Shown here: piece by piece, positions 1-62,870 of the stretch
How the letters are laid out: the number at the start of each line of letters is the position of its first letter
How positions within the stretch are numbered: the first letter of the stretch is position 1
Assembly (NCBI RefSeq): GCF_000002075.1
Contig: NW_004797416.1
Coordinates: forward strand, 624,027-688,026
DNA: 64,000 nt
Direction: 5' to 3'
Origin: Aplysia californica
Lineage: Eukaryota
Made by a program: the position numbers and the translations under genes
The notes under the pieces: model-generated
The model's database searches: none
Told to the model about the DNA's origin: nothing
The model's input: the letters and a program-made list of their open reading frames with translations, nothing else

Positions 1-35
<35 letters not shown>

Positions 36-149
36 GTAATAATACTTCCATGGGCCTCCTAAACGTTCTGAAACGTTCTCAGCCTCACAGAAAGCATTTC
101 ATACAAGCTGCTATTTCAGAGGCATCTAAAAAAAACCAGCACAGTGGCA

Positions 150-1198: not shown

Positions 1199-1218
1199 TT
1201 AGTTAGTTAGTTAGGTTT

Positions 1219-1259
<41 letters not shown>

Positions 1260-1266
1260 CAGTTAA

Positions 1267-1310
<44 letters not shown>

Positions 1311-1345
1311 ATAGTTAGTTAGTTAGTTAGATAGTTAGTTAGTTA
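1199..1345. repeat. (TTAG)n microsatellite
   Basis: Direct observation. Confidence 0.95.
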
Positions 1346-2238: not shown

Positions 2239-2279
<41 letters not shown>

Positions 2280-3027: not shown

Positions 3028-3147
3028 CTCACAGCTCTTCTGCACCGACTCCCGGAATGCATCAATCTTCATCATGCTTTTTCCCATGCCGGGCCACTGA
3101 CAGCCCATGCCAGTAAACACAAACACGATGGGGCGACGAGTTGCAGC
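3028..3147 (-). CDS. Gene B exon 12, AT start ([18 protein letters not shown])
   Basis: 120 nt as in gene A. Confidence 0.93.
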
Positions 3148-4899
3148 CTGGATGTGTATGTGCATGGTATGGGGACAAAGAGAAATATATGACACTAAAT
3201 GAAAACCACGACAACCAAATCCTCTTTACTTTGCTTCAATAAAAGTAATGATCACAAAGTATCGTAATGCACATTGTGGAAGAATGATACTAATGATATT
3301 ATTAGTCATAGTGCCTGTACTACACACAAAACACAAAGGCTGAGTTCTTGAAGTTTAACAAGTGGGCAAAAAATATGCACCTCTCTCTCAAAACATGTTT
3401 TCAAAATTAAGGGAAACAAAACGATTGGATATTCCACTGCTGTCACACGTGCGGTACTATAATTGTGTCTTAATGAATGAATGGACACATAAGCAAAGAA
3501 GAAGGCCAGCATAAAATATATGTTTTCAGTGACAATGACACGTTTTGTTTTTACTCATTTAAGAAATCTTTTAGCCTTTAAGACTGATATAAATTTTGTG
3601 TTTACTCCAAAAGGCTAACAAAAAGACATTTAATTTTCATTGATAACCAGACCAGTACAGTCATAACTTTTGACAATTGCAAATTTGGATACATTACGAG
3701 ATATGTTTCACACACGAACGAACTAATTCTTGGATAATAGTGAATAAAGGAAAATCTTAAACTTAAAATTTTCAGGAGGGGGGGGGGGGGCATATTATAG
3801 TTGTATTTAATTGTTTACTTGGTCCCTGAGAAGAAGAGTGCACGCCGCCACAAGTCTACACTAGCCAGGAAGAATGGAGCCCCAAAATAAGGACAATCTT
3901 TCTAATTTATTGCCAGAGGTGCAAACTCAGATTAATAATGATAATAAAAATAACAATGGAGTGCATGTGTAAAGATTTAAAAGTCTCCACACAATACGAT
4001 CTGCACGCCAACAGCAGTTTTGTAATGCTGCTTTAGCTACCCATGACATTATGTCACCACCAAATTACCTTAATCTCTGTGACATTTTCAGGGGCGTTCA
4101 GGAGAGTAAATCCTCTATACAGCATCTTCTGAACTGGCTCATTGGCCGAGGACTGGAGCAAAGCTTGATAGTGGACATTGTCTGCATGTTTCTGCACCTC
4201 TGCACAAAGGAGGAGAGGCAAGAGACAACTATGTTAGTATGTACTGAAAGGCCCAACTGTGGTTTGTCCTGTTAGAAACTTTACTGAATAAACAGCTGGT
4301 CATAGTAATGTGGAAAGCTTTAAGCTATATCAAACAGAAGAGATGCATACATATGAGGTAGGAATCAACCTCTTCGTCTTTTGCTGAAAGCATTAAACTG
4401 AACACCCCGATTCCGATTGTTTTTGTTTTTCTTTTTCTACATTCCCTCAGTGAACCTCAGGGCAAAGCAAAACTTGTCTTTTCGCTCTGTTGTAGGTGTA
4501 GCTGTCATATCGGGGATGGACGTTAAATTCGCCCGTCTTTTAAACAACCTTACAGTGTTGAAAAGGGTGTGAACCTATGGCCTACAATGACCAATGTAGA
4601 GGTGAGAAAAACCACAGTGACACCAAGTTGCGAGTCCTGTTGCCAGTAATCGCAGGACAGCGTACGTTACTCTTATACCCACACCCTGGCGCAAAACGTG
4701 TTTCTACTTCAAGAGAATTGTTTAATTATATAAAGAATGAAGGTAAATCATGCCATTCGTATTTGAGAAAAAAATTGTTTAGAATGGCCTGCACATATTC
4801 AGCCTCAAAACGAGTCATACAAAGAATGAAACAAATGACATGAAATAAAACATAAATAGATAAATAGGATGAATAGATAATAAAACACAACAGAGGAGA

Positions 4900-4945
<46 letters not shown>

Positions 4946-7471
4946 GAGAGAGAGAGGGGGGAGAGAGGAGAGAGAGAGAGAGAGGCGTGGTGGGGGCAAA
5001 ACTCAAAATGCAGGGCTGTCCCTCACCATTGAAGATTTGCCTGAGACCATCCTCTGTGCGGGCACCGTATGTGAACAACCGGACAGCATTGCCTGAAGGA
5101 TGAATAGCGTTGTTGGGACGGTCATTTTTCCTGCAAAAGAAAATCAAAACATTTCACTTTATGTCAATGAGGAGTTTTCTTCTTTTTTCTTCACTTGCTT
5201 TAAAGCCCAGAAATCTGCTTACATGAGCCCACATGTTTGGGTTAGTGGGTGTGTCACTTACCTATGCACGTTGTTAGTGTTTTGGAGTGGAGGGGNNNNN
5301 NNNNNNNNNNNNNNNNNNNNNNNNNNNNNNNNNNNNNNNNNNNNNNNNNNNNNNNNNNNNNNNNNNNNNNNNNNNNNNNNNNNNNNNNNNNNNNNNNNNN
5401 NNNNNNNNNNNNNNNNNNNNNNNNNNNNCATTTAGTTGAGCACATTGTGAGAGTTGTGTTGGGTTTTGTCACTTAATTGAGCACATTGTGAGAGTTGGGA
5501 GGAAGGGGTCACTTATTTGAGCACACAAAGAGAAGGTCACCTTCAGAAGCACATAGTGGGAGTTGGGGTAGTTGGGTGTGTCATTGGATTGAGCGCACAG
5601 CGTGAGTTGAAAAAAAAGGGGTGGGGGGAGGGGGGTAGATCACATGCTTGAGCATACATTTTCAGTTGAAGTCGGTAAGATACTTACTTGAGAATAACGT
5701 GTGAGTTGGTCCCTCCAATGCCAAAGCCACTGATGCCACACACACGTCCAGTCCAGGGGGTCATTTCAGTGACCACTTTGAGGCGACCATCCAGCAGACC
5801 GGGAATTTCTCGGTTTGGTCTCTCAAAGTTCAAATTGGGAGGAATAACGCCTTCTTCCATGCCAAATACACATTTAACCAGTGCATTGAATCCTGAAAAA
5901 TCAAGAGAAAAGCCCTTAAAGTACTGACATGTCTCAAAAGGATAGCATCATCATCCAATAAAGATCACAAGACGTTTGAAAAATTACGGCGACTGAGACA
6001 AAAATACAACACTTGAATAAGCATGTTAGCTCTACATTCTACCAGCTTTTACAGTATTTACAAAGTGCACTGCCTTTCTCATTCGTTTTTCATACAACAT
6101 ACATGTTTGTCTTCTTTACAATCCTTTCACTTTTGTGAAAGTGTTGTATTAATGGAGTGTGGGTGGGTAATTTTTTTTACATTAATTTATGAATAGACAA
6201 AGTTCCCCTACTAGACAGGAAATAGTCAAATCATAGAGTAATTAATTTTCGTAATACTATGAAACAATTATCCCAGGAGAAATTGGTCGTTCTAAAATTG
6301 CCGGCTGTTATAAATTCGTGTAAGGTCCATGACTGCCACACTGCTACTAAAACAGCGATCTTCTTTTTCTCTATAAGAAATGAACCTGCTAAAAGGGGCG
6401 ACGTGTATATTTTAAAAAAACAATGAAATTAGTAAGATCATAGCGTGTAATCCATCTTTTTCGTCCTCGATTTCTAATAGTATCATTGCCCCATCCTCCC
6501 AGTCCGTATGTACGTACCAGCTGCTGCCTCGGCATGTCCCACGTTTGTTTTGATAGATCCCACCAAAAGTGGTGATTTCCTGCGTTTTCCACAGAACACA
6601 TTGGTGACCGCGTTGGCCTCAACAGTATCTCCGGCAGATGTGCCTGTTCCGTGGCATTCCACGTACTCCACCTGTGTAGACATTGCAGGGTAAGGACCAC
6701 ATTTCTGCACTGATGAATTATGGCAATAGCAACACTGACAACACAAAGACGAATCTGTCAGTATCAGGTTGACTGCTAACTGCTGGTAGGCATAAAGTGT
6801 AGATGACCCGTTACATGGGCAAGCCAGGGGATAAAACACATGCACATTTTAATGAGAGTGACTTTCCATACTGCAGAGAAGGTAAAAAAATGCAAAGTAA
6901 ACGTAGGATTCTACACATATCACCAAGCCAGTGAGAGTGATATACTGCATATGTCAACAAGTGATGGTATTGTTCTACATATCTCAACATGTGAAGGTGA
7001 CATTCTTCATATTTCACCAAGTGAGAGTGGTATTTTTCATATTTCACTAAGTGGAGGTGACATTCTACAAACTTCACCAAGTGAGAGTGACATTCTGCAT
7101 ACTTCACTAAATGATGGAGGTATTTGACATACTTCACGAAATGAGGGTGGCATTCTAGATACTCCTTTAGTTTTTTAAACGAATAGGTGAGGACAAAGGA
7201 GTGCAGCCACAGCATCCAATAAAAACATGAGATCAATTACAGACAGTAAAACAGTTTTAGATGCTTCACTGCGCGTCTAGTACAAGCCAAAATTTTTCTC
7301 AAACAGAGACTCGTAAAATCCACTTGAAAGAAATTAAGAAGATTGTCATGATTATTTATGACTGTCTCCCTCGAAGCTTCTTCTGTGCAGGTCCATCATT
7401 CAGCATTGGCACATGTCGCCATAACACCAACATCAACAGAACATGACTTCATGCCCGTTTGTTTTGGTGAG

Positions 7472-7532
<61 letters not shown>

Positions 7533-10500
7533 ACGTGTCTGAAACAATGTAAACCGTTTACTTGACTTCAAGAACAGATCACCGTGTCACTCACCACTTG
7601 GGGGTCAATCCCGCATTGCCTGTAGCACTCGTTGATGGTGTGCATCTGACCAATGACTGAGGGATGGTTGAAATCTGGAGGAAATATAAGATGGGCATAG
7701 TAACAGTTAAACACAAAAGGCTTTAAGCCGTTTTTCCACGGCGTGAATAATCAATATGTATAAACATTATGTGTCAAATACAAGCACATTTTCACTGAAT
7801 GGATTTAATCGCTTTTTTAAAAAAAAGGTATTTCAGTGAATGATAAAGACCTGCCGCGAACGCATAACGCAATTTTTTTTTAAAACTGGTCTAGAACTAC
7901 GCGCGAAGTACTCTGCGATCGATGCTTACTGTCTGCCCATATTCGACCTTGGCATCAGAAGATCCACAGGATCTGTCAGTCATCCTGAATCAATTCACAA
8001 TAGCCAATAAGAAGTCACGAATGGTTCGCAATGAACTGAGCTAACCAGTAGTCTGCAAATCAAGATCTGGAACAACTACAATTACTTACACTGTACAAGA
8101 GCCAATCAGATACCATGCAGACTACGCATTGCAGCTTATCAATATCAAACACATTACACACTGCAGCAAATCAGATGTTAAGAACACTACAAACTGCAGC
8201 CGTTTAGAACGGTGGTGATGGCAGAGCAATGTCTGTACTGATCGTCCCGTCTGTTTTGTAGTTGTGCTTCAATATAATTAACGAAAGCAGAAGAATTAGT
8301 TTGAGTACGCATATCGGCTCACCAAAGTCGCCGCTGTTTCCGTCACATGATTGGAAGCAGTGAGCAAGTTTGCAGTAGACTCTCCTCGCATCTTCCTCTT
8401 TTTGCAGCAGGACCGCACCCACCGCCTCACCACGACCAAATCCCTGAGCTGTGGAGAGACGGACAAACACCAATGCAAAAGACTAAAGGGCACTTTATGA
8501 TCAGCTGAACCAAACATTGGATGAGAGGTAAGAACAAGGTTGAGATGGATTCATTATTTTAGTCAACACTCATGTGAAAGAAAGAGAAAGAGAAAATGAG
8601 AGAGAGGGNNNNNNNNNNNNNNNNNNNNNNNNNNNNNNNNNNNNNNNNNNNNNNNNNNNNNNNNNNNNNNNNNNNNNNNNNNNNNNNNNNNNNNNNNNNN
8701 NNNNNNNNNNNNNNNNNNNNNNNNNNNNNNNNNNNNNNNNNNNNNNNNNNNNNNNNNNNNNNNNNNNCGTTGACTACAATTGTCAATTTTTCTTCTTCAT
8801 TCTCCTTCTAGATTTCACTGGAAGTCAGTTATCTGTGGGTCAAAAACAAACGGCAGCAACAAGGAAAGGACAACCCCCCCCCCCCCCAAGAAAGTAAAGG
8901 ATACCTACAAAAACTAGAGCAAGATTAATGATATGATACAATCGAACCTGCTCTAACAACCACCTGTCCAAGACAATCACCTGTTCAAATGACACCTTCC
9001 CACTTTTCCCTTGCGTTTCTATGTGATGATGACACCATTCAAGAGGACAATCTTTCTAAGATGACTACTTTTTTTCTCGACAATGGAAGGTCGTCTTACA
9101 CAGATTTGACTGTAATTACGACTAAAGCTGAATGTAGAGACCACTGACCTCTCTCATCGAAGGTGTAACACTTCGCGTCAGGACCAGCAGCGCCAAGCTC
9201 TATAAAGAGCAATGATGACATGGGGTTGCAGTGAAGCTGGCAACAGGCCACGATAGCGCTGTCGGCAACGCCCATGCGTATGTCCTTCATGGCCGTTTCC
9301 AGTGCAGCCAAGTACCCTGAACATGCTGTGTCTACACACACGCTAGGACCTGAGAAAAAACCGGTTTTTGACAGTTAGAAAATACAAGACTGGATCTCCA
9401 CCCCACCTTTGATCACAGCCCGTTAACTCTTTGGCAACGGGCATGTTGCTTGCTTGAAGACGCTCTGTTTTGGGTTTATTTTAAAATAGAAGCAAAACTT
9501 GATTAGTCATATTCAATTCCGTTTTCTTTATTTCAAAGTAAAAAAAGCAGGCTACATCTGCATACTATGAAATATGCAAACTTGTTGTTTTGATTAATGT
9601 ATGATGGTTTGAAATGTGCTGCAACATTGCTTTCGTCTGCAGATCGGAGATAATGCGTCCGCAGCGTCCCCCAAGAGCTACAACATATAGTCTGTCAGTT
9701 CGCTTTGATCAAGTTAATCAGATTCTATTAAAAGAATATTTTAAACATCTGTTAATACAGCATGCTCCAAAGTATATCAATTCATTTCTCCTATATCACG
9801 TTATTTTTTATACTTCTCCTGTTAACGCATGTATGTTATGCATTCTATTAATTTGAAGTAGTCCTCCCAATAGTTCTTTTAGTAACTTCCAAACAGCATG
9901 TCATAACAATTCACTTTCTCTAGCTCCGAAATAACAAAGCTTCTGAACCCACGGGAGAACGAACGGCTATAGAAATGTAACTTATTTTTATATAGTAGCA
10001 GTGAATACCTCTACTAAGCCTAGATTAATGAAAAAAAGCACTCTGATGATGAGACATAGATCTACCTCGAAGATCCATGGCGTAAGATATTCTGGAAGCT
10101 CTGAAGTTGTTGACCACGCCCATGCCCTTTTTAGCCTCACCGATGACCTCCAGTCCTTTGCTGAGCCAGTAACAGTTGGCGTCATAGGCCACACAGGGGA
10201 CATACACGCCCGTGTTGGTGCCTCGTATTTCCTGCATTGAGTAACCTGTAGGGGTGGAGGGGTGGGGAGCACAATCGGACAAATGAGCAGATGACTGATG
10301 CGCATCAAACAATCTCTATCTTTCTCTCTATCTCTCTCTTTATGGAAAGGTGGAACATGTTTGTTTGTAGCGTATCCCTGATGCAGGGTGAGAAAAGACA
10401 GTGATGATGATAAACAATAGGAGAATGGGTGGGGGGCAGCTCTAGTAGTCCTTTACTGTTATCTGACCTATAGACATAAACCAAGATTTAGAGAGTCCTT

Positions 10501-13332
10501 ACCAGCATCCACCACAGCCTCGTAGGCACCCTCCAATGATAAACGGATGTTGGGATCAAGGAACTCGGCATTCTTAGGGGCAATGCCAAAGTAGTCGTTG
10601 TCAAAATATTCTGCATCATCTATGTACGCGTGCTGCTTTTGTGTGCCATACTTTTCTGAGGAAGGAAATCAGAATATATGTAAAGGGCTAAAGGGAAAAA
10701 CCGAGGGATATCACTTTCTGGCATTTTTAAGAAAAACAAAAATGAAATGCGTCTACTCCAGTGGTATTGAGCTACTCGTCAGGTTTTAGCCGTAGACACT
10801 TAGATGAGCCTAAAGAGGTGCGTAAACATTTTCCAAATCACGTCACAACTCAAATTATTTTGTTCCCTTCGAGTACATGTACTGGTTCTTTGATCTATTA
10901 AGAAGCTAAACTCTTTACCCTGATGGCCAGTGTGTCGGCCCTGCCAGCGTCAGTCTGTAAGTTCAATGCCAGTGGAGTGACTAGTCTAACAGTTGAACCT
11001 ATTCTGAAGACAACGTATATAAAATAATCCTATGTTCGAACGGCCATTTCCCACTTCCCTCTTTTTGGGGGGGAAAAGTAAATAATAATAATAATAATAG
11101 ATAGCATTTGTATAGCGCATATCCCCGCTCAGCAGCAGGCTCTATGCGCTTTACACTATATTATTACCCCAGCAGACCATAGAACACTCCGAAACATTCT
11201 CAGCTTCCCGAGAAGCATACAGTGCAAGCAGCCGATTAAGCGCTCAAACACTAACAAACTGACAAGATCTTTCGCTGTCTATAGCCGGGTACCCATTCCC
11301 ACCTGGGTGAAGTGAGGAAAATTCGTGTAAAGTGCCTTTCCCAAGGACACAACGTTGGGCCCTTGACGGGATTCGAACCCACGACCTTACGGTTGCGAGT
11401 CCGAGAGCCTAACCACTAGGCCACCGACGCCACCGTAGACAAGAACCATCTTACAGACTAAAAGTACGAGGATTATAAAGTCTCGAATACGTTGAACTCG
11501 CATCCTTCCATAGCACGTGTTCCTACAACAGCAGAAAACAAGCTTCAAAGATCGTGGTCTCCGTAACAGGCCAAACATTATATCCACATCTTTTGTTGTC
11601 ATTTCGCTACCCCAGAGTTTCTGGCCGTTTTGATTCACTAAGACCATGAGATCAGAAACCAAAATATGCTCTATCTGCCCTATGAAAATCGTGGGATTAT
11701 TATGAGTCGTCATCAAGACATTCAAATAATTGTATTTGAAAAAACTTGATAAGCTGTGAGACTCAAAGTTTGTTATGTCAAATTTCTCAAATCGAGGTAC
11801 TGAGCAGATGGAACTTTGAAAATCTAAGGTAGCGATTTGCTGTCTTTCATGTTCAATCTCAACGACACACTCCTTTTTGGACAATGGTTCTTTGTTACAT
11901 ACTTTACTGAGGATCAACTTCGCAACTCACCGATGTCAAATCTCATGGGTTTTGTTGTGAAGACCTCCTGTTTGTTCCAGAGCGCGTGTTTCACGTCAGT
12001 CAGGGTCCTTGCTTGACCAACTCGGCCAGCCATGCCCGTAACGCAGATGTCACCTAGAGAACAAAATCAGACACAGTAAATAAAAACTGTAGACTTGTGA
12101 GTCGATTTCCACACAATAAGTCAAACGCATCGAATACGTGTAGTCTTTAAAGATTTTTAAATTCCATCTTCTTCTTTCTCCACCTGCTTGTAATCATTTA
12201 TCCGGCATCCTTTCGTCTGCCCCCACCCCCTTTCCCCGTTTGCTTTCTCCATCACTTCCTTACTAATCTCCTTCTCAAACCTCCTTCCCCTTTCCTTTCC
12301 AGTCTTTTTCCTTCCACCCTTCCTTTTTTTCTCCCCCATCCCTCCCGCACAAATGCATAGTTGTTCGCCTTCTAGCGTTTAAGGTTTACCCTTCCACCCT
12401 CGAGTCCCCCCACTCTCTCTCTCTCTCTTNNNNNNNNNNNNNNNNNNNNNNNNNNNNNNNNNNNNNNNNNNNNNNNNNNNNNNNNNNNNNNNNNNNNNNN
12501 NNNNNNNNNNNNNNNNNNNNNNNNNNNNNNNNNNNNNNNNNNNNNNNNNNNNNNNNNNNNNNNNNNNNNNNNNNNNNNNNNNNNNNNNNNNNNNNNNNNN
12601 NNNNNNNNNNNNNNNNNNNNNNNNNNNNNNNNNNNNNNNNNNNNNNNNNNNNNNNNNNNNNNNNNNNNNNNNNNNNNNNNNNNNNNNNNNNNNNNNNNNN
12701 NNNNNNNNNNNNNNNNNNNNNNNNNNNNNNNNNNNNNNNNNNNNNNNNNNNNNNNNNNNNNNNNNNNNNNNNNNNNNNNNNNNNNNNNNNNNNNNNNNNN
12801 NNNNNNNNNNNNNNNNNNNNNNNNNNNNNNNNNNNNNNNNNNNNNNNNNNNNNNNNNNNNNNNNNNNNNNNNNNNNNNNNNNNNNNNNNNNNNNNNNNNN
12901 NNNNNNNNNNNNNNNNNNNNNNNNNNNNNNNNNNNNNNNNNNNNNNNNNNNNNNNNNNNNNNNNNNNNNNNNNNNNNNNNNNNNNNNNNNNNNNNNNNNN
13001 NNNNNNNNNNNNNNNNNNNNACGAAGACACACTCAGGCTATCATTGTCTGTCTGAACGTTTGCTTTGTTCTTTGGTATTTAGAATTCCTTAGACACTCTC
13101 CCTATTTACAAGCTTTAACTCTTAGTCTCTTGGTCTATTTAAACGTTCGCCTAGGTATTTAGCATATCTTAGATACTCTCATCTCACCCACCCCCTTCCC
13201 TCCGGAAAATATCCCCAGCCTTTTTTAATGTTCACCTTGATATTTAGCATATTTGAGACACTCGGGCAGGTCCGAATTGGTGCCATTGATGGTCGGCGAC
13301 GTGTTGCTGTTTGAGTCAGCGTAGGCTGGCAT
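3028..13332 (-). CDS. Gene B: paralogous FAS-like polyketide synthase, 12 coding exons (KS + start of AT), 3'-partial
   Basis: ATG at 13332 with in-frame upstream TGA; 12 phase-consistent GT-AG exons, 1674 nt. Motifs DTACSG, HGTGT, KTNVGH, GMGCQW. Eight exons have the same length as their gene A counterparts. Confidence 0.92.
4069..4199 (-). CDS. Gene B exon 11, linker (YRGFTLLN)
   Basis: 131 nt as in gene A. Confidence 0.92.
5027..5130 (-). CDS. Gene B exon 10, KS-AT linker ([13 protein letters not shown])
   Basis: 104 nt as in gene A. Confidence 0.92.
5250..5710. repeat. Degenerate tandem copies of the gene B exon 9 donor region
   Basis: Repeated tcacttaNttgagcaca...gagttgg. Confidence 0.75.
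5688..5892 (-). CDS. Gene B exon 9, KS end ([15 protein letters not shown])
   Basis: 205 nt as in gene A. Confidence 0.94.
6518..6671 (-). CDS. Gene B exon 8, KS His residues (VECHGTGT...KTNVGHAE)
   Basis: Catalytic motifs; 154 nt as in gene A. Confidence 0.95.
6905..7170. repeat. ~30 bp minisatellite (~8-9 units) resembling the start of gene B exon 8
   Basis: Unit gtgagagtgacattctgcatacttcaccaa. Confidence 0.8.
7595..7674 (-). CDS. Gene B exon 7, KS ([10 protein letters not shown]...GIDPQV)
   Basis: 80 nt as in gene A. Confidence 0.92.
8323..8448 (-). CDS. Gene B exon 6, KS ([11 protein letters not shown])
   Basis: 126 nt as in gene A. Confidence 0.93.
9149..9349 (-). CDS. Gene B exon 5, KS catalytic Cys ([12 protein letters not shown])
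   Basis: Active-site motif; 201 nt as in gene A. Confidence 0.95.
10066..10245 (-). CDS. Gene B exon 4, KS (RGTNTGVYV...[11 protein letters not shown])
   Basis: KS motif; GT-AG. Confidence 0.92.
10503..10655 (-). CDS. Gene B exon 3, KS ([22 protein letters not shown]...DAG)
   Basis: FD..FGI...DP..R motif; GT-AG. Confidence 0.92.
11080..11434 (-). mobile_element. tRNA-derived SINE, family 1, full length
   Basis: A box TGGCCTAGTGG, B box GGTTCGAATCCC, core CCCAGGTGGGAATGGGTACC, (TTA)n tail; near-identical copy at 40553-40915. Confidence 0.9.
11931..12053 (-). CDS. Gene B exon 2, KS start ([13 protein letters not shown]...)
   Basis: tag|GT...G|gtgagt; KS N-terminal motif. Confidence 0.9.
13236..13332 (-). 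CDS. Gene B exon 1 (N-terminal extension [11 protein letters not shown]...KYAKYQ)
   Basis: Polypyrimidine/cag acceptor near 13362, ATG, donor G|gtgaac whose phase fits exon 2. Confidence 0.7.
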
Positions 13333-14509: not shown

Positions 14510-15170
14510 ATGGGCTTTAATATGGAGCCAAACTAGATGTTAAAAGGAATGATATTTGTGTTTTCATAGAGGTTTTTAAAACACATCTTGCAGCTTGGTT
14601 GCGAAGTCTTCACAATCTATTCATTAATTATGTTGGTATGTTAAAAAGGAGTCGGTTGTAACAGTCAGTATGAGATAAGACAGATGATGATATCTGTGTC
14701 TCCAGAGATGTCTCGCTTATAAATGTGCCATTTGTGCAATTCTTCGGATCTCTAAATCTGAAATAGAGTGAAGTAATAGATACATTTTGGATTTTTTAGT
14801 TCACGGGCAATTTGTTCTAGTTTTGGCCTTTGCTTTAAAAATCACTTTCCCATTTCCAACAACAAGATGATCTGTCCCGTAAATTGTGTCACCCAAGACT
14901 TTAAGTTACTTAAAATTATTTCGGTCTTATCGACGTTCAACCTCAGCCCTGTTGGATGTTATTCAGATCTTAACTTTTTTCTACACATTTTGTTATGCTT
15001 TGAGCCATTAAATGCATATTTCCTGGCCCTGGGGACGTGTACAACTGTATGTCGTCTCCGAACGATCGCAGGAATTATTATGATAGATTTAAGTAGTGTT
15101 GTGTACAAAGTGTATAACAGTGGTCCCAACACAGAGCCGTGTGGTGCCCCTCAGTTTAATCTGTTGTCAG
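14510..15170 (-). mobile_element. L2/CR1-type LINE reverse-transcriptase fragment (degenerate)
   Basis: Remnants GAPHGSVLGPLLY, DD.QLY, LN.DKTE, N.AAR. Confidence 0.7.
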
Positions 15171-27300: not shown

Positions 27301-30300
27301 AGAAAACGAGTAACGGACAAAGACTATAGAAGAAGCATTTGGACTATAGTAATTACTGTATCAACAGATACCATTGGCAGGAGAGAGGTAGCATACAGAT
27401 TCCAAAGCCAGGACAGAGGATAATCAAGCTACATTTACTTTTGTTGCTATTAAACCATTTGGCACATACTTCTATGTACTATGCTAGAGCGCAATAAAAA
27501 TGAACATAATAAAACAGAGAAATATAAATGCAGGAAATATTTGTCACGACGTGGTGGAACCAGGCACTCGTCATGTTTAGACATGTAGAGTTATTAGTAT
27601 TATTTCAAAGCTTATTAATTTGTCTTACTTTCAATGGAAAAAATAGTCAACTATCTTGAAAAAGTCGAAATATTTGCTATTGAAGGAGGTGAGGGTCACC
27701 TAGTTTCAGAAGTAAAATCAGCGAGCGAATGGCCGCCAAAGTTTGGCGACTTCCAAAGCTTGAGAGTCCTAAGAAACTGCAAAGTTACATTTTTTGTCTT
27801 AAATCAACCTTTTTCTGCAAGTTCCAAACATAAATTGTGTTTTTAAATGAACCTTATAGGTGTCAAGTCCACAAACAAACAAAATTGATCAAAAATATCA
27901 AATAGAGAGAAAAATGCCAGTTTCTTCAATTTCATTATTTTGACGAACACCGGATTTCACCATGATGCCTCAAATATTAGTATTGGGTCTTTGTGGTATA
28001 TTTTCTCCGGCAGACAAACAACCAGAAATGTCAAAACCCAGGAAGGAAGGGAAACAATGTTAAAAACAGTAACTTGACCAACAGACCCACCTGGCAGCCC
28101 GTCAGCTTTCCTCTTCTCACACGTTCTCTCCATCACGGAGTTTCCAAACCCGTAGTTTGTCTGTGCGGCGTTACCCCAGCCTGAGGCCATGCTGGAAAAG
28201 GGCACAAACCACCGAAGTTCTGACCCACACAGCTCACGAGACGCCTGGTCCATGAAGATTGTATCGTTGATTTTACTGTTGGCCGCTTCAGAGAATGTTT
28301 CACGATTCAGTTGGGAAAGGAAACGGTCATGCAGAACCTGAACACAGAGGAAGAAATAAGTGTATACTACAACGATGTACATGAGCAGATGCCTTCAAAT
28401 CCAGGAACATTAGTGTGAGTCCAGAAATACAAGAGTTTTAGACCTAAAATACATTCTGTGACTTTCGAAAAACATGGTTATTGGTGTTAACAAGTGGGTG
28501 CAAATATGAAACTGAGAACGAGAAGGGTTATTTCTTACACACTATAACATTGCAATCCTTTAGCCTTCCTTATTTAAAAGCATCTTTACTGAAAAAGGTT
28601 TGTTGAAAGCTGAAGTTGTTCTGAAACGACAGCAATATAATGTCATACAGGGTACAGACTCCTCGCATTTCAGAATGTCCGAGCCTATTGTTACTTTCAC
28701 GACTACGATTGAAATGAATACTGACACACTATAAACGTACCAGAGAGAGTACAAAAATGCCTCCTACAGGTCCCATCTGCTGAGCTTGCTGTATAAGTGC
28801 ACGTGCATCAGCGGTGGACTTGAGCGTGGTGGTCACCACAGAGATGTTAGCTTTGTAGTTCTCTCGGAGGATCTTGATCTTGTGCTCCTGGTAGCCATTG
28901 CTCACACCACGCCTAGAGCCATACAGCAGAAGGGACAGGGTGTAAACACGGGAAGGTAAGTCGAGTTGGAGAGGGCTAACAAAGTCGATAGAAAGAAGAA
29001 GATCGTATAATGCTGAAAAAATGGTGAAATGGTATAAGTTTAACGCCTCTATCAACATTTGTAGTTTTTAAGAGGGGAGACTTTCGAGTTTAACGTCCAA
29101 CTCCGAAAGGACCGAGCTAAATAGGAAATTTGGGTAAAGCACTTTTCTAAAGGACACAAAGTTGGACCTAGCTGAGGCTCGAACCCCCCCCCCCCCCCCT
29201 CGAACCAGCAAAATCATGATTTCGGGTCCTTAGCCAAACCTCTAGGCTAATAACGACACCACTTAATATTAGAACAAAGTGTTATTCTCCTCAATTCCAC
29301 CCCCCCCCCCCTACTTTTCAGCGTTAGCACGTAAGACTTAGTGCTTCAATGACTACATTTCTACACCAGTAGCCACGTCTATTAAGATCGCTGTCGCTGA
29401 GAAACTCAGGCATTATTTCATCTCCTCTTCTATTCCGAACTAAATACTGGAGGGTAAGGCTTCTACCTGATTGTAACCAATCGATGAGGTCAGGAACTTT
29501 GACCTGAGTGGAAGTCTTATAACGCACTTTTAAAAACAAAAGCAAGTTCTCTAAAACACACCTGGAGGTGAGCACGATGTTCCTGGCACCCCTCTGCACC
29601 AGCCAGTGTGTTAGTTCCAGTCCAAACCCTCCAAGGCCACCACACAAGATGTACACTTTCCTGGGGTCACAGGTCGCACGCGGGTTAACAGGAAGACTCA
29701 AGGGGTGAGAGAGGAAACGGTTGTAGGACTCCTCCTCGCGAACCTAACACGGGTAAAATGGGACTAAATTGAATCTCAATCGATAAAAAAGCCCCAAAAG
29801 AGAGCACAACAACAAATAAGTGATTGGACAGATGGCTGAGTGTACATCCGGTACCAGTTGGCCAGATCCAACTCAGGAGAGCTGCTTTAAAAGCTCAAAA
29901 TGTTGTAAAAGAGAAACCTTAAACAGTCAAAATCTCATTGGAAAGAGATACTTAAAACACTGAAATTCTCATTGAAGAAAGGTACTTAAAACCTCAAAAC
30001 TTCTGGAGAGAGCCATTTAAAACACTCATAACCTCAAAAGAAAGCTTCCTAAAACACTCAAAAGCTCATGATTAATGAGCCATGTTTTCCCATAAGTAGA
30101 GAACTTTCAAATTCCTTTTCCTGCCCATTGAATTTGAGACCCTCATACTCAAATAGACATATGCACAGGTAATTTCAGGTGTTGCTGATACAGGTACTCG
30201 TTGCAAAAGGAGCCTCCCACAGACGGTAACATGTTATGCTTTTGTCCGGCTTGAAAGTGAAAGTCTTCCGAGGCAATGTGAACAAAACATACAGATGAGC

Positions 30301-33172
30301 GATGGGGACAGCTTTTTCTTGTGTTGTATTTCCCCGAATCTGAGTTTCAGTATCTTTTCATTCATGCATATTATTTCATCTTCCAAGAAAAAGATTTTCG
30401 CATTCTGACATTTTCCATAAATATATCTCACAACGTAATTTTGTCTAATACAAAACGTAACTTACCTGTTATCTAGAAAAAAAATGTAATATACATGAGC
30501 ATTCACTCTTGGTGTGTGGATATGTGCATGTGTTTCAAAGTTACATGAGGTACCTCAATGACGACTTTTCCAAGCACCCTGTTCTCTGAAGCGGCTTGGA
30601 AGGCCTGGCTGATCTGCGCGGCCTCGTAAACGGTGGCACCGATGGGCTTGATAACTCCTCCTTCCAAGTCCTTGCCAACACACTGGATGAGCTTGGCATG
30701 GCTGGCCTTGTCGTTGAGGATGACCACTGTGTCTACACGTGTGTACGTCATGTTCTTCTGCATCAGTTTGGCCGCTGCAGACCACACAGGGATAACAGTT
30801 TGGGACATGAGGGACAATACAGTTTGCAAAATAGAACACCAGGACATTTGATCAGCGTGTCACAGCGATAGCTAAGATATACAACAGTTGATGACAGCAA
30901 GGATACCGTTTATGTGTATACGAGTCTGCAAGAGTTCGGAGGATGCCTTCATACATACATTATATCAATGTGCTACAGGAAGGGAACATTAAAATAAAAC
31001 AATTTGTGAAATCAAGGACGACTATATACGGTGCATGTCGCTTTACGTCCTTCCCAGCTGTCCACAAGAGTCACAATAAAACACTATTGCAAAAAGTACT
31101 GATGCAGGAGGTTCTAGTTTTCTGCACAAACTTGCTTTGTGAGAGATGTTTTATGGAAAATGTCAGAATGCGGGAATCTATTTCCTGAAGGACAAAATTA
31201 TACGATTGACTGAAAAGACACTGAACGAGGTGACTCACCGAAAGCTTCCACAACCTTGCTGGTGTTGGTGCGTCCCATCTCCACGTACTGACCGGAGCTG
31301 CCCAACGAGAAGACACTTTCCTCAAACAGTTCGTCATTGGCGAAAGGACTCAGAACCACGTCCACACCTGCAGCCAGCAATATACACGGCNNNNNNNNNN
31401 NNNNNNNNNNNNNNNNNNNNNNNNNNNNNNNNNNNNNNNNNNNNNNNNNNNNNNNNNNNNNNNNNNNNNNNNNNNNNNNNNNNNNNNNNNNNNNNNNNNN
31501 NNNNNNNNNNNNNNNNNNNNNTGGGGTGAAAATTTGAGACAAAGGAGAAACTAATCCTGACCAATAATACAGTAATGAGGACTAACCTAGGTCACATTTC
31601 ATTATGACACCAGTGAGTGTAGCTTTGTTTCTGTTAACACTCTACACAAACCTTTCTGTGTCCTTAGGAGTGGCCGGTTTCATTATATTTTTGCTCTTAT
31701 AAACACAAGGATATTTTCAAAGTGACTTTTAGCTGTCAGTGGTGACAGAAACTGAAGATTCAGTACAAATACACCTTAAATACACTAGTCACAGCGATCA
31801 CAGCATGTCTATACCAAGTGTTCAGTATGAAAAGCTTTTGCAAACTCTCTAGTCAAACTGACATCATGACAAATGATTTTGACCTCTGTTGCAGTTCCTT
31901 TTTCACCCATCCCATGATCTTCAGTCTAATCGTATACCCTCAGCTACGCTCGTCACTTTAATATCACGGCAGGCATATCCGTACCTTCACCACTGGTCAA
32001 TTTCTCAATGCCGTCAGTAATGCTAAGTTCTTGTCTCCGGAATATGATGTGAGACTCTGCTAGTTTGGGGAAATATTTCCTCACATACTTCCTCTCCTCT
32101 TCTGACTCGACTGTGGTGAAGACAATGGCGCCGACACTGAGAGCTGTTCGGATGGCAGCCTGGGGGGAGGGGGGATGCATATGAGTAAAATATAGCCACA
32201 GCAGCCGGATCTTTCTTTTTTTAGGGGGGGGGGGGGGTGACAGAGAATGATGTATCTCTCCACAAACATACTTCACATCTATTTTTTTTAAGTCTCACTG
32301 TGATAAAGTAAAAAATAAACTATAATGCCTGTACAGAAACAACTGAACAATGTTTCCGGTGGATACGACGAACACGAAAGCTGAACATTATCACCTATAG
32401 ACATGACCCCCCCCCCCCCACTACACACACACAAACATACACACACAAACATACACACGCGCGCAAACACACATGGGCACATTACCAAACTTATACACAT
32501 TTTTACATCCTTTCACATAAACAGCTGCACACAGCCAAATNNNNNNNNNNNNNNNNNNNNNNNNNNNNNNNNNNNNNNNNNNNNNNNNNNNNNNNNNNNN
32601 NNNNNNNNNNNNNNNNNNNNNNNNNNNNNNNNNNNNNNNNNNNNNNNNNNNNNNNNNNNNNNNNNNNNNNNACCTACTGTCCAAGACTCTATGACCTCGA
32701 AAAAAAATAACTTCTGCAAATTGGCCAGGATCTACACCAAATTTGAGAGGACCTTCGTTTGACTCCATAATCTATGCTCAAATTTGAACTGGTCAGATGA
32801 GCCTGTTTCATCAGCAATGTCTTGGAGTAACCGAGAAAAGGCCTTTTGCGTTAGAAAATACGCTGAATTTAAATTTGATAAAAAGCTTCAAGCCAGTTAT
32901 TGGGGGAAATAGGAGTTGATTCGAGATCAAGACCTGGTGCACCTTTGAAAAATCAGTTCAGGGCGTTACAATCAGTTCAAGGTGCGCGAATTTCTGTCAA
33001 AAAGCCTTGATTACGGGAGGGAGTAAGCATAAACAAACCATGGGACACCCTGAACACGCACAAAGCATTTGAACAGTGTCATTTGCAGACATTGCGTTTC
33101 CAGCCCTTTTGCCACCCACCCGCTCCCCCCTCCCAAAAAACGAGCGCACACACACACACAAATACACAAACG

Positions 33173-33258
<86 letters not shown>

Positions 33259-36200
33259 AACGCGCTCGCGCACATACACACAGAGCAGGACTTACTGTGC
33301 CCATGGCCGTGGCGCCCGAATGTATAAGAATCGTTTGTCCCTCTCTCAACGGATTCTTCACCACAAGAGCGTAGTAGACCGAGAAGTAGGCGTACGGTAC
33401 AGAGGCTGCGTCCTTCATGGTCCAACTGTCAGGAAGGTCCACAGCGAGACCTCGTGAGTAGTTGACACCAGTGGACAAAGCCTGAAGGATTGGGACATGG
33501 GAGGTTTTAATACGAGTTTTGCTACACTTGCAACACAAATAGGTCATATAAGTGTCGACATGAGAGGTGAAACAGTGTCTTATGGACGAAGGTTCGTAAC
33601 AATGCTCAATCAATCCCTATGAAATAAAAGATATTGTAAGGCTTCACCACAAACAGTGTATAATTATGTGGATAAATGTGTAATATGAATGATAAACACA
33701 GATGCCAAGATGACAAATCATGGTTACTAAAATATTAAGTAACAGTAAACCTATAAAGAAAATGTTAATTCAGCATTTGGTGGTTTATAAACATTATCTA
33801 CAGTAACGCATTTTATAAGGAAGTATACACGTAAATGAGTGCCAAATACGTCGGAATGAAGCATCATGCTGCATGAGCCAACGGAGCGCAAACACTAAAA
33901 GCCCAAAGGCTATACTGTGACAGTATCGCTTCCACTCATCGGCTTACCAAACCAGGGACAAGACCAATAACTCTAGTTCCGTTGACACGTCTGCCCACAA
34001 ACTCGTAGCCGAAGAGACCATGATTGAAACGCCACTGAAGGTCTGCTGTCTTGGGAATTTTTCCTGGCATGAAACAGATCACGGTGGAATCAGTCAATTT
34101 GAAAACCATACTTTTTTTTATCAGAAAATGCCATCGACTTTTTTGTGCACATTTAAAGTTTATGAATTTACGAACACATCGCTTTACAGTTTTGAACATA
34201 GAATAAGGCAATGTGCGATTTCAAAGGACCATGAAAGTGAATCTAAAACTCAGCAAAAATGACGACAAGTGACAAAGTAATTTTACTCTATATAGATATT
34301 CATACACTATTTCAGTAATCTCTGTGCCAGAAATGTTGAGCTCTGGCCTGAAACTTATGAACGCTGAAGACATTATATAACTTTACAAGGTAAAATTGAA
34401 GTAATTTCCAACGCTGAATGATAGTAATAAGGCTCAAACATACAAACATGAATCAAATAAGATCAAAGAAATTTGCCCCCTCTAGTAAAACTACAAGTGA
34501 CGAACAGCTACTAGGTAAGAACTCTAGCACTTATGCAAAGACCCACTCTGTGCACCAGATCTAGAGAAAATCAATACAAATAGACTGCAAATATCTCACA
34601 TTCGTGCGTGAGAATAATTTAATTTTTCAGACCACAAAATCTGAACAATACTTGGAAGGTATAAAATAGAAAGAGGTAACTGGTATCAAATATACAATTT
34701 TGAAGAAGGATTTTTGAGTCATATAACCAAAAAATAACATTTCATTGTTTATACAAAAGACATTTTGATGAGTTATCGAAAAGATTAGGGATTTATTCTT
34801 TTAATTTGTCCATGGATGACTCTTTAGAAAATGAGATTTATACAATTTCAAAAGCAGAAAATATTACAAGACCGCATGCATGAAACATTTGCCACGCAAA
34901 AACATAACTTTTGTTTTAATGTCATCTTACTTTAGCTTCTGACTTTTGCCAGCAACTATATACAGGTGTGCGTAGACCTACCATGAGCACACAGTATATC
35001 TCTGTCATTGAGAGCGCTGTAGTAGACCGAGCAGAATTTGTCGTTGTCTCTCTCCATGAAATCATCAGTGGCTAGCATCTCCTTTCCACTGCTGGTCCAC
35101 CGGGCACTGCTTGGATCTCCAATCACAGGCACAGTCACATAGGCATCCGCGGCCCGGGCAGAGTTCTTGAAAGATGCTGAAAAGTGGAGAAGATAAAAAA
35201 TTAAGCGCATGTTCCCAAGTTCCTTACCTAGAGGTCTGTCTCTATCTGTGTTATTTGACATAGTTGTCTGTAACATTAAGTCGCACCCTTCTTGGGGCTC
35301 TTTACAGCCATTTAGCTTTGTTCCTCCCACTTCATTACAAGCTGTCTTTCATCATGAGCGAGATGTAATGATACTAAACAGATAATCAATGTAATGTCTT
35401 ATTGTGGGCATGTGCACGACCACAAGTATTAATGTATGTGTGTGTTTGTTTATTTGTTTGTTTGTTTATGCCTATTACGTGGACGTGAGACTCACTGTCC
35501 AGGGGTTTGCGGGCAAAGAATCCCCAACGCCCATCCCTGAAGACATTTTGGTACAGGTCCAGACCGACCACCGTCTTCTGGAGTCGCTCGATGGACAAAT
35601 CAGCTTTGTCAGTGGTCTCTTCCAAGTTACTGCAGAGAGCAAACCTCACTTTGTCACCTCCAGGCTCTTTGCGCAGACACTGATTGCGGGGAGAGTAAAG
35701 TTCAAAGGTCAGTCGACGGGGAGATATGGAAAGAGTGGGAAGAGAAACAGAAGTGTATTGCTCAGTAATGTGGGTAGAAACAGCAAGGAGTGAAAGGAAA
35801 CAATATTACTATACTAAGGTTGTTAAAGGCCATTGCCCGATTGCCTGATGCAGACAAACGTTGCCGATATGCTTGTAGAATATATTATACTGAAGTTGCC
35901 TAGCTTAACAGATTATATTTAGGAGACATTTAGATCCATTTTATCTAGAAGCCTGATAATCTTATCCAAATGGGGTTATCTAAATTACAAAGACCGGTTG
36001 AGTCATGTAAGATGAAAGCAAAACGAAATGTCTGGCAAGAAACACAGAGAAAAATCCTGCTTTAAGTAAAATATTGCAACTGGGTTGATTCATTTCACAG
36101 AACCTCAGCAACTGAAATGCGTGTATGAAATACCAAATGGCCGTGGGGTAGGCAGTTGCATACCTGTGGTTTACTTGAAAGAAGAAGGCAAGGACTACAG

Positions 36201-57000: not shown

Positions 57001-59393
57001 AATATTTTAATCTAGTTTGCCAACATGCATGCAAAAAAAAAAATCTATTTCCATGAAAAATAAGTGCGGTATTTGTTTCGTAAGACATGTCAATGAAATT
57101 CAATATGGCCGCCGTAGCCTTGGAAACGAAACTCTTTTCCTCAAATTTGATTGCAGATTTCAAGACTCTTTACTATGCTTGTTATATGTGTGAAATTTGG
57201 GAAAATTTCATCTACTAATAAGCGAGATAGCGTTCAGGTGTAGCCACCCCCCCCCCCCCTTTTAAGACGTGGCAGAACAAATGTGACTGAGCCTGTTCTT
57301 CTGTTGAACCCTTCAATTACATTGACAGGTGGCCAAGAAAGCAGGTGATATGCATGCAGGTGGTCATGGCATGATTAAGAGGGTCAATAGGAAGGCAGGC
57401 AAACTGTCATACTGGAAAGAGAAGTGTATTTCTCACCATTAAAGATCTGCCTCAGGCCATCCTCTGTACGTGCACCATACGTAAAAAGACGGACTGCGTC
57501 ATTAGAAGGGTGTACCGTGGTGTTTGGACGATCATTCTTCCTGCAAAACCCCACAAAAATGATATAGTACTTTTATTATTAAGTATTTCCATTTTCGAGT
57601 TTAAATACAGTCGAATTTGCTCTAATTACCAGCCGTCCAAGACAATCACCTGTACAAAGAAACATTTCCCACTTTCCCCTTACATTTTAAGCGTATTCTC
57701 ACTGTCCAAGAGGATCACCTGTTTAAGATGACCACTTTTTATCGACAAAGGGCAGCCGTCTTGGATAGGTTCGACTGTTTTGCATTTGACGGCCAAGCTG
57801 AGACCAAGATAAATAGCTTTGAAACAATTGAAGGCTCTCTGCTACCTCCCATCACACCTTGATTAATAGTTCATGACCCAGAAGTAACATACTGTCCCTT
57901 AATGGGGGGGCCCTTAAACTTAAACCAATCGTGACTAGCAAATTATACCCAAAAACAGAAACTATGATCACTTCAGCCGCAAGAACAATCTATAATCATA
58001 TCGACTGAGAGACAACAGAAACCTCCTTACTTGATCACACGGTACTGATAGTGGGGTGAGAAGGACATTTCACTTGAGTTCACATTTTGAGTTGGGGGAT
58101 GGGTTATTCACTTGAGTTCACAGTTCGAGTGAGGTGGATGGGTCACTTACTTGAGCACACAGTGCGAGTTGGTTCCTCCGATGCCAAAGCCACTGATGCC
58201 ACACACTTGTCCAGACCAGGGGGTCATTTCAGTGACCACTTTGAGACGGCCGTCCAGAAGACCGGGAATCTCGGGGTTGGGTCTCTCAAAGTTCAAGTTT
58301 GCAGGCAGGAGACCTTCCTCAATGCCGAAAATACACTTGACCACAGCGTTGAAGCCTGAGATCCAAACGTAAAAAGCATGAAAATAAACAATTAATGAAC
58401 TGTAATGCATAAGCTCCGTTTAAAGAATATAAACATCATACAGAGAAACCTCATACAAAGAAAGAAAAGAACTACCACGATGAGTTTAGGCTGTAAAAGG
58501 ATAAAAGGATGGGAAGGGGGGAGAGTAAGAAGAGTAAGATTTAAATTATAATGGTTGACAGGCCTGTAGCTCCAACCAGGGTAAAATCTGCACTTAGTTA
58601 AGTCACTTTAACGTAATATAGATATAAATGATCAACTTCAGTCGATATATCTATACTGGACGCAACCTCTACCAAAATTTCCATATTTAGAAGAAAGTAT
58701 ATCCCATTTGAGTCGCTACACATTTTGTAAAAACCATGTTATTCTGAAAAAGTATGTTGAGCAATAAAAGCGTTCGCCCCAAGCACACGAAGTATTTTTC
58801 CACTCGTTGCACGGCTGCGGGTATGCAAACGAAGCAATTTTTGCCTGTTCGTCTCTCATCACCGCCAAGGGGCGTCAAATTTCAAAGCCATACGAGGAGT
58901 CGAAATTTCCAAGTCTTCCCTGGGCTTTTTTTTTTTGGTATGACTATTGTGTTCGTTGAATCAAGAAGCAAAAAAAAGTCCTGTAAGGCAGCACTATCAC
59001 AAGTACGAACATGCACACATGATTAATCATTTCTGATATTTATGATAGTGACTTTTTGTAGCACAGGACCAAGCAACAGATACTGACCACCGGCATAATA
59101 TGTTGTGTAGCGGTTAGGCGATTCGCTGTCGCACCGTTTTCTAAATGATATGAATTGTGTCGATTGGAGCGTAAAAACACCTACAAATAGGTACTGACCA
59201 GCAGTGGCCTCAGCGTGTCCGATATTTGTTTTAACAGACCCCACCATGAGCGGCTTGGTTCTGCGTTTGCCACAAAACACATTGGTGATGGCGTTGGTCT
59301 CCACAATGTCACCTGCCCGAGTACCTGTGCCGTGACACTCCACGTACTCCACCTGAGGGACACATCAAAGACATGTTGCTACCTTAGAATTAC

Positions 59394-59461
<68 letters not shown>

Positions 59462-61469
59462 CATTTTTTTGCCGTTTTGGGTTACTTAGACCACAAGATC
59501 ATAAACCAAATGTTCTTCCAGCTCTGTCACAATCGAAAGATTATTAGGGTCACCATCAAGATACTCAAAGAAATAATTTCGAAAAAGCTTGACGCGTTGT
59601 GAAACGCAATATCTTTAATGTCAAATGATTCAAAACAAAGTACTGAGCAGATGGAACTTTGCAATTCTAAGGTAGCGATGTGAGAGGGACAGCAGCATAC
59701 TGTCGGTAACCTTGAACAAAAACATATTATCGTACTTGTAAAACTTACTACAATAAGGGAGTCGATTATTAGTATGTGTACTCGCAATTTTAGAAGTTTT
59801 ACTTCTCAATCTTATGTGAAATGTGTTAATCTGGTTCCATCTGTAAAGGCGCACTTTCAAACATTAAACTTGTGTCGTAGATCACAAGGTAACAAGACCA
59901 TGATAATGGGGTAGAAATATACTTAGTAACATTAGAAATCTGTGTTGGCTTGTGTGCTAGCGTACGGGTAGAGACGACGGACAAGACCATGGCATTCAGG
60001 TAGGACCACCTCCTGTGATATCAAAAGTATGTGGATGTGCATGTGGATGTATTTTTGGAAAGGGCACACAATATCTGTGTGATCAAGCGCGGTTGATATG
60101 ATTGCATGCTTTACTATAGTACCACCCTGCCTTGGTACATAATATCTCCTCGCAGAATTAACATTTTCAGCTCATACATCTGCCATTTCTGCAAATGAAG
60201 TATTAAATACGCGTACAGTCTAAAACAAACACAGGAGTTCACGCCCGGCGCGCAGAATTCAACACTGTCACTTACTGTGTGGGGATCAATTCCACACCGC
60301 TTGTAGCACTCAGTGATTGTTTGCATCTGGCCAAAGATGGAAGGGTGGTTGAAATCTGGAGAAGGAAAAAAACCCAAAATATTTATTTTGGCAAACATAA
60401 CCGTGGAGAAAATGTATAAACGTTTTCATACCTATCGAACGGGGTAATTAGAGGATGGTGTTGTGTGGGTTTGCTCCTTATTTCCTATCAAACATCTATT
60501 GTCCTATCCATCATCTACGGGCATCCACTCCGTAATCCAGCATGATATCAACTGGGCTAACGATAGGCCCATTAGATAGCGCTAAAAGAACTAGCTCTGA
60601 CAAATAATTAAGAGTGAAATCGTTCTCTTAAAACCCTCAGCACCATTAGACCTACCGCTACTGCATTTAACTACATTTTGCCGTAAGTTGGGGATCAAAG
60701 GTGAGCCAATATAATAGTACCCAAAAATTCTTGTACTTCCCAGTACTTTTAACATCATAAATCCTCCATCCTCTCCAACATAGTCACCGTTATTTCATCT
60801 CTGTTGGAATAAAACTAGTTTTTATTCTTTTTAATGGCAATATGGAACAGATAATAACTAATTATGCCCACCAAAGTCGCCGCTGTTCCCGTCGCAAGAC
60901 TGGTAACAGTGAGCCAATTTGCAGTATATTCTCCTTGCATCTTCCTCCTTTTGGAGCAAGATGGCACCCACTGCCTCACCACGACCAAATCCCTGAGCTG
61001 TGGACATGTNNNNNNNNNNNNNNNNNNNNNNNNNNNNNNNNNNNNNNNNNNNNNNNNNNNNNNNNNNNNNNNNNNNNNNNNNNNNNNNNNNNNNNNNNNN
61101 NNNNNNNNNNNNNNNNNNNNNNNNNNNNNNNNNNNNNNNNNNNNNNNNNNNNNNNNNNNNNNNNNNNNNNNNNNNNNNNNNNNNNNNNNNNNNGAGAGAG
61201 TGTATAAACATGTAACAGATCACAAAAATGCTTGAAAGATTGAAGCAGTCTGACAAAAATGATGTTATACCAAAAATCTACAAATGAGGAGGTAAAACAA
61301 ATTTCTTTACTTAACGTGGGTCAATTAACCAGTTTGAGGATGATGGTGTTAATTTCATTCTTAGGCCCTTATATCAAAGCTATACTGAAAGACGATTATA
61401 CCGATGAAACCATTCACAACTTCTGAAAAGCGCATTTTTTAAAGTGACCTGAAAAAATCAGTTGAACTC

Positions 61470-61524
<55 letters not shown>

Positions 61525-62679: not shown

Positions 62680-62870
62680 CTAAAAGATGCGGCGGAGGGA
62701 GAGATGAGAGGGATGATACTGTTTAATTCTGTAATAATAAGTTATTAGTTCGGGGATCACCCGAGTAAGGTGCACCATAAAAACTTACTAACTGAATGCA
62801 ACCATTTTACTACATCACAACAAAGACAGAAAACAAAATTGGGCGAAATAAAGAATTGGAACAGAAGGGG

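Follow-up and report, generated by a model that had tools for sequence, protein, structure and literature searches.

Does the enoylreductase (ER)-like domain encoded on the minus strand of positions 30554-35176 of a 64,000-nucleotide stretch of the Aplysia californica genome (contig NW_004797416.1; this whole stretch is called the window below) still reduce enoyl intermediates, or has it been kept for its fold? The host gene resembles those of the animal type I fatty acid synthases (FAS) and is assigned below to mo-clade 3 of the animal FAS-like polyketide synthases (AFPKs). As the cofactor-binding and active-site residues have been replaced, the six exons most probably encode an ER-like domain that has kept the FAS-type fold and that neither binds NADPH nor reduces enoyl intermediates (ER0). 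A first-pass annotation of the sequence had put forward a structural ER0, and this reading is well supported in silico by the replacement of the loop glycines that contact the diphosphate, an acidic 2'-phosphate region, the loss of L1796, D1797 and R1841 (human FASN numbering), purifying selection and the FAS-type fold of a paralog.

The reading of positions 30400-35400, together with frame and splice-site tests, identified six ER exons on the minus strand, all with an AG acceptor and a GT donor, and two assembly gaps in their introns. In the following list, P0001 is the RefSeq protein model of a tandem paralog and P0005 is an orthologous protein.

34982-35176, minus strand: ER exon 1 (E1), N-terminal substrate-binding lobe; AG/GT splice sites, phase, and tblastn to bird FAS, P0001 and P0005
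33948-34063, minus strand: ER exon 2 (E2), 84% identical to the paralog; splice sites and phase
33296-33481, minus strand: ER exon 3 (E3), with LIHSGATAMGT at its end; phmmer match to the FAS ER of PDB entry 4w82 (E 7.6e-13) and same-genome comparison
32541-32671, no strand: assembly gap (N) in the E3-E4 intron; protein alignments contiguous across it
31985-32159, minus strand: ER exon 4 (E4), carrying TTVESEEER; PDB alignment and same-genome FAS control
31391-31521, no strand: assembly gap (N) in the E4-E5 intron, 24 nucleotides (nt) upstream of the E5 acceptor; protein alignments contiguous across it
31239-31367, minus strand: ER exon 5 (E5), carrying VVLSPF and VEMGR; splice sites, phase and sequence comparison
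30554-30774, minus strand: ER exon 6 (E6), carrying TYTRVDTVV and AFQAASENRVLGK; PDB alignment to 4w82/8vf7 and Pfam ADH_zinc_N_2 (27.2 bits)

The six exons sum to 1022 nt, or 341 codons counting the single base carried over from the upstream exon, and the intron phases (1, 0, 0, 1, 1) agree at every junction, where the split-codon residues are those of P0001. The exons are also open and in frame with the flanking pseudo-ketoreductase (pseudo-KR) and ketoreductase (KR) exons: the upstream pseudo-KR exon ends in GAC A directly before the donor GTGAGT (phase 1), handing one base to E1, and E6 ends in phase 0, with the next exon opening with VREEE before it runs into the KR. The limits 30554-35176 of the first-pass annotation were exact, and its description of six open exons in phase was borne out by the GT-AG sites, the phases and the junction residues. 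Neither gap interrupts the alignments to P0001 or to the FAS of human, pig, insect and bird, in which no residue is missing: around 32541-32671, the end of E3 (...AMGT) continues into the start of E4 (AAIRT), and around 31391-31521, the end of E4 (...TSGE) is followed by a split codon for G and by the start of E5 (VDVV). As the protein alignments are unbroken across both, no coding sequence is hidden in the gaps. Pfam searches, performed exon by exon like all searches with the window's ER, placed only E6 above the threshold (ADH_zinc_N_2; cut-off 27 bits); single exons being too short for Pfam, the RefSeq model of the paralog was scanned instead. A compound (CA)n(GA)n microsatellite is present at 33150-33262, ~35 nt downstream of the E3 donor, and CA-rich tracts of a similar kind lie beside the gap, at 32400-32540.

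Human FASN numbering was taken from the 4w82 alignment and cross-checked by the distance of 26 residues from K1771 to D1797. The glycine-rich NADPH loop reads GATAMG (within LIHSGATAMGT, 33296-33328, E3) where human FASN has G1676-S-G-G-V-G1681. In the 2'-phosphate region, TTVESEEER (32091-32117, E4) is found rather than the TTVGSxEKR of FAS, such that G1700-S-A-E-K-R1705 of human FASN becomes E-S-E-E-E-R (G1700E, A1702E, K1704E). ALNDRD (34998-35015, E1) stands where FAS has LNFRD, VVLSPF (31342-31359, E5) where it has VLNSLA, and VEMGR (31270-31284, E5) where it has LEIGK, with K1771 replaced by arginine. The E6 sequence TYTRVDTVV (30722-30748) takes the place of FHGxLLDA, with threonine for L1796 and valine for D1797; AFQAASENRVLGK, also in E6, takes that of AFRxMAQGKHIGK, with glutamine for R1841, and ENRVLGK (inside 30554-30586) that of GKHIGK. 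Residue T1654 is a serine in E3. All six motifs quoted in the first-pass annotation were present at these coordinates. The residues T1654, K1771, L1796 and D1797 adjoin the nicotinamide ring in the cryo-EM structure of human FASN with NADPH (PMC12058525); they read S, R, T and V in the window, two of these changes being conservative and two not. R1841 is an ER surface residue, and its alanine mutant leaves FAS activity at ~20% (PMC12058525). The mutation of GGVG to SPVG, which is the standard way to kill the ER of a polyketide synthase (PKS), abolishes ER activity in bacterial PKSs (monensin, aureothin; PMC7327777).

A search of the same genome with E3 yielded four loci: the window gene, the tandem paralog (loop HSGASATG), a gene on contig C76 (HSGSGGVG) and a divergent copy on contig C75 (HNGTGSIG). 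The C76 locus, which is the 'Aplysia_FAS' of Lin et al. 2024 (AplCal3.0 scaffold00076), is a true FAS that keeps SLNFRD, LIHSGSGGVG, TTVGSTEKR, VLNSLAEEKL, FLEIGK and GKHIGKVV. In the alignment to ER domains, a check that the first-pass annotation had proposed, the cofactor motifs are replaced relative to both 4w82/8vf7 and this same-genome FAS. Among the 150 best E3 relatives in 1.8 billion proteins, the GxG(G/A)xG loop was kept in 116 of the 149 that were readable. Because the C76 FAS keeps its motifs and these relatives keep the glycine loop, the erosion of the window ER is more than chance. FAS-like paralogs from molluscs, beetles and stick insects are among the best relatives without this loop, and ER loss in FAS-like paralogs looks widespread across protostomes. 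The second loop glycine is repeatedly Thr or Ser (GxTxxG) in beetle, stick-insect and sacoglossan FAS-like proteins (P0022, P0095, P0140, P0117 and P0044). The fourth FAS-like ER of the genome (G000:C75:1047000-1056999) combines the loop HNGTGSIG (GxGxxG) with AVNDVD for LNFRD and has diverged strongly elsewhere; this locus may correspond to the mo-clade 2 AFPK reported for Aplysia.

We also considered the other domains of the host gene, for which the following features were recorded.

24965-62722, minus strand: host gene as seen in the window, with ketosynthase (KS), acyltransferase (AT), dehydratase (DH), pseudo-methyltransferase (pseudo-MT), pseudo-KR, putative ER0, KR and ACP (acyl carrier protein) domains; tblastn with bird FAS P0127 and with P0005, and DH His motif
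35494-35682, minus strand: upstream pseudo-KR exon, approximate ends; tblastn and donor site
29561-29743, minus strand: first KR exon, with the intact NADPH motif GGLGGFGLE; tblastn and phase

Searches with P0127 and P0005 placed many small exons between 62680 and 24965 of the minus strand, in the domain order KS-AT-DH-pseudoMT-pseudoKR-ER-KR-ACP, and the 5' exons of the gene may lie beyond 62722. The catalytic motifs of the KS (DTACS, HGTGT, NIGH), AT (GHSLGE), DH (HxxxGxxxxP) and ACP (LGLDS) look intact, and the KR, in which GGLGGFGLE and the Ser, Tyr and Asn residues are kept, provides an internal contrast to the ER. The erosion is ER-specific, since the gene's motifs for the KS, AT, DH, KR and ACP look intact. 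FAS residues 2200-2513, corresponding to the C-terminal thioesterase (TE), gave no match (E≤0.01) in the stretch that separates the ACP exon from the gene that follows, and the ortholog P0005 stops seven residues past its ACP match. The AT motif GHSLGE was rejected as a predictor of the extender unit, given that EcPKS2 has the same motif and uses methylmalonyl-CoA.

The tandem paralog is located ~56 kb away on the same contig. Its ER exons, read from P0001, are each 81-93% identical to those of the window gene, and it carries every eroded ER motif. This second AFPK gene starts inside the window, downstream of the first, and its ER exons lie outside the window.

1-10668, minus strand: paralog, running past base 1
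10650-10483, 9356-9108, 6674-6516 and 5896-5687, minus strand: KS exons of the paralog, 73-87% identical to those of the first gene

P0005 is a 1454-residue protein encoded by an intron-less 4.5 kb JGI contig (metatranscriptome), which is taken to be a transcript, and its ER motifs are eroded in the same way as those of the window gene. Aplysia AFPKs of mo-clades 2 and 3 have been catalogued by Lin et al. 2024, in which the transcript of the paralog (SRR830638_NODE_435) is labelled 'clade3' and the KS transcript of the window gene (NODE_12029) is listed as FLP in the supplements and alignments. On the basis of the label of the paralog's transcript, the window gene and the paralog are probably mo-clade 3 AFPKs. 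The clade 3 protein ctg826_1 (Supplement file 13 of the same study, antiSMASH) has an identical HSGATAMG, and the antiSMASH label given to the eroded domain in that supplement is 'PKS_ER'. The text of Lin et al. 2024 gives the status of the KR, MT, TE and ACP by clade, and no ER status for clade 3.

Comparison of the ER exons of the paralog and the window gene yielded a synonymous divergence (dS) of 0.36 and a nonsynonymous divergence (dN) of 0.069, with a dN/dS of 0.19 (336 codons); for the KS exons, dN/dS was 0.12. In a quick ER tree, used for its branch-length pattern alone because it was otherwise poorly resolved, with long branches, the stem shared by the Aplysia sequences and P0005 measured ~2.9 substitutions per site, as against 0.36 and 0.56 for the terminal branches. 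The picture suggested by these sequences is that of an old burst of ER change followed by purifying selection, and the erosion predates the duplication that gave rise to the window gene and its paralog. The dS between the paralogs is very uneven (1.09 for KS, 58150-62722 vs 5687-9374, and 0.36 for ER, with 0.08 for E2, 0.16 for E6 and 0.95 for E3), a pattern that hints at gene conversion in patches along the 3' half.

A long stem followed by short terminal branches, with a dN/dS of 0.19, would also be consistent with a new non-redox role of the ER-like domain in mo-clade 3 AFPKs (ligand or ACP docking, chain-length control, cyclisation), the more so as derived pocket residues (NDRD, GAT(A/P)MGTAAIRTAL, SEEE(R/T), (V/I)E(M/I)GR and RVD) are conserved across the Aplysia genes, P0005 and one clade 3 protein of a separate data set. 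A purely structural domain that holds a dimer together is, however, equally expected to be conserved, the comparison comprises four sequences, and no candidate chemistry or ligand was found, so that we consider such a role improbable. It is similarly improbable that the mo-clade 3 ER pocket (sea hares, bubble snails, pteropods) was rebuilt after the burst of change with a new conserved set of residues (NDRD, GATxMG, SEEER, RVD) for a non-redox function, such as a docking of the ACP or the chain that would program chain length or cyclisation.

The preferred reading, that of a structural ER0, is consistent with the predicted fold. An AlphaFold model of the paralog ER (P0001:1-356) had a pLDDT of 89.5 and a pTM of 0.90, and a Foldseek search with this model retrieved the human FAS ER first (4w82, TM 0.78/0.91), followed by FAS and EcPKS1/2 modifying regions (9cq9, TM 0.82). 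P0001 also matched the Pfam families ADH_zinc_N (44.8 bits) and ADH_zinc_N_2 (47.6 bits; cut-offs 31.8 and 27, respectively), a match that denotes membership of a fold family, not activity. By proxy of its paralog, the window ER is predicted to be a well-folded FAS-type ER with a medium-chain dehydrogenase fold. Its fold and its place along the polypeptide are those of the ER of animal type I FAS (human 4w82/8vf7, pig 2vz9, Aplysia C76), and its exons are laid out similarly, at 31-34% identity, whereas these enzymes keep GSGGVG, TVGSxEKR, VLNSLA, LEIGK, LLD and FRxMAQGKHIGK, bind NADPH and reduce enoyl-ACP, and animal FAS, unlike the window gene, has a C-terminal TE.

The same kind of erosion has been described in two AFPKs of mo-clade 1, EcPKS1/2 of Elysia chlorotica (PDB 9cq9, 9ctk/9ctl), which resemble the window gene in their FAS-like architecture, ACP C-terminus, and intact KR and DH. 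The ER0 of EcPKS2 has kept its fold, and its central loop glycines are replaced (GASVVG, as compared with GATAMG in the window); LNFRD and TVGSxEKR are altered in both, the EcPKS2 motifs in the PDB alignment being LNLRD, GASVVG and TLTKNSDET. EcPKS1/2 are non-reducing by experiment (PMC7280274, PMC11831141), and their architecture is given as DH-MT0-ER0-KR-ACP in PNAS papers of 2023 and 2025, in which the ER0 is ordered, makes dimer contacts (ER0:ER0' and DH:ER0') and 'lacks active site residues' (PMC10515154, PMC11831141). The window gene differs from them in that it probably belongs to mo-clade 3 (Euopisthobranchia), has an ER ~30% identical to theirs, carries NDRD and SEEER where EcPKS2 has NLRD and NSDET, and is known here from its sequence. 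Fungal LovB, the lovastatin nonaketide synthase, belongs to a distant lineage and also has a structurally kept dead ER in an iterative synthase; alone, it gives a polyene or pyrone, but it is complemented by the trans-acting ER LovC. As ER0 domains in AFPKs have been published since 2020, the concept is not new, and the window gene is a further example of it.

Several observations nevertheless weigh against this reading. The fold evidence comes from a paralog that is 81-93% identical, not from the window's own joined protein. G1676, G1681 and R1705, the last being the usual position of the positive NADP ligand, are kept, and two of the changes, arginine for K1771 and serine for T1654, are conservative. 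The mitochondrial enoyl reductases Etr1p/MECR, of the medium-chain dehydrogenase/reductase (MDR) type, bind NADPH with a non-canonical glycine motif, and on this precedent the loss of the motif would, by itself, be no proof. MDR reviews checked for non-canonical glycine loops in active MDR enoyl reductases (MECR/Etr1p) stated no example. These retained or similar residues, together with purifying selection on the domain and the Pfam matches of the paralog, might indicate an ER that still works with NADPH or another nucleotide via a non-canonical loop, yielding saturated or partly saturated chains. We regard this as unlikely: both central glycines have given way to beta-branched or larger residues, four acidic residues occupy the 2'-phosphate site, the domain has lost L1796, D1797 and R1841 (which docks the ACP), this ER clade sits on a very long stem branch, and EcPKS2, with the same pattern, is inactive (PMC11831141).

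The RNA data also count against the ER0 reading. Three raw poly(A) RNA-seq runs of the species and one contig run, aligned to positions 30400-35300, provided no reads on the ER exons and no splice joints, and the published transcript contig of the window gene spans the KS part only, at ~3x coverage. As there were no RNA reads on the exons, the splice model is based on protein alignments and GT-AG sites. The null result is no proof of silence, the tissue of the runs being unspecified, although it is what would be expected of a decaying or silent pseudogene in which the ER erosion was part of a general decay. Such decay is very unlikely: every exon that was examined has an open frame and canonical splice sites, the catalytic motifs of the KS, AT, DH, KR and ACP look intact, and the erosion, which affects the ER only, is older than the duplication. 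The dN/dS values of 0.12-0.19 and the transcript contig matching the KS of the window gene in the data of Lin et al. 2024 point the same way, and both the pseudogene and an artefact were rejected on these grounds. The only part of 30400-35300 matched by RNA reads or contigs was 33525-33558, in the E2-E3 intron; as all the reads continue into unrelated sequence, this segment is a dispersed repeat and does not reflect expression of the locus.

If the domain is indeed an ER0, the synthase would iterate condensation by the KS and AT, reduction by the KR and dehydration by the DH, and the ER-like domain would hold together the dimer of the modifying region without delivering hydride, such that double bonds would persist. 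The ER pair has probably been kept as part of the dimer interface of this region, as in mammalian FAS and EcPKS2. By analogy with these systems, we infer that NADPH binding has been lost and that the role of the retained domain is probably structural. With the KS, AT, DH, KR and ACP intact and the ER dead, unsaturated polyketides in which C=C bonds are left would be expected, and a conjugated polyene is a plausible product. Polyenes and polypropionates (navenones, haminols, lignarenones, dolabriferol and auripyrones, among others) that would fit such enzymes occur in sea hares and cephalaspideans, the holders of clade 3 genes. The first-pass annotation had gone further, stating that each cycle would stop at the alkene and give conjugated polyenes; this is a reasonable guess by analogy, but too simple, as EcPKS1/2 skip the KR in some cycles, giving ketone/pyrone polyenes (PMC7280274, PMC10515154). 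The sequence does not predict which cycles use the KR and DH, which extender unit is loaded, how long the chain grows or how it is released, and AFPK products have been called unpredictable (Lin et al. 2024). A trans-acting reductase may also supply enoyl reduction, as LovC does for LovB.

AFPKs have been recognised only lately as makers of polyketides in animals, and no more than two, EcPKS1/2 of mo-clade 1, are characterised. In Aplysia, the mo-clade 3 pair combines an apparently dead but constrained ER with an intact KR and DH, and unsaturated products are therefore predicted for mo-clade 3. The two genes can be tested in a mollusc that serves as a laboratory model and whose own true FAS provides an internal control. 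At 14962-15150 on the minus strand, a reverse-transcriptase-like fragment (GSVLGPLLYTLYT) separates these AFPK genes; it is probably the remnant of a long interspersed nuclear element (LINE).

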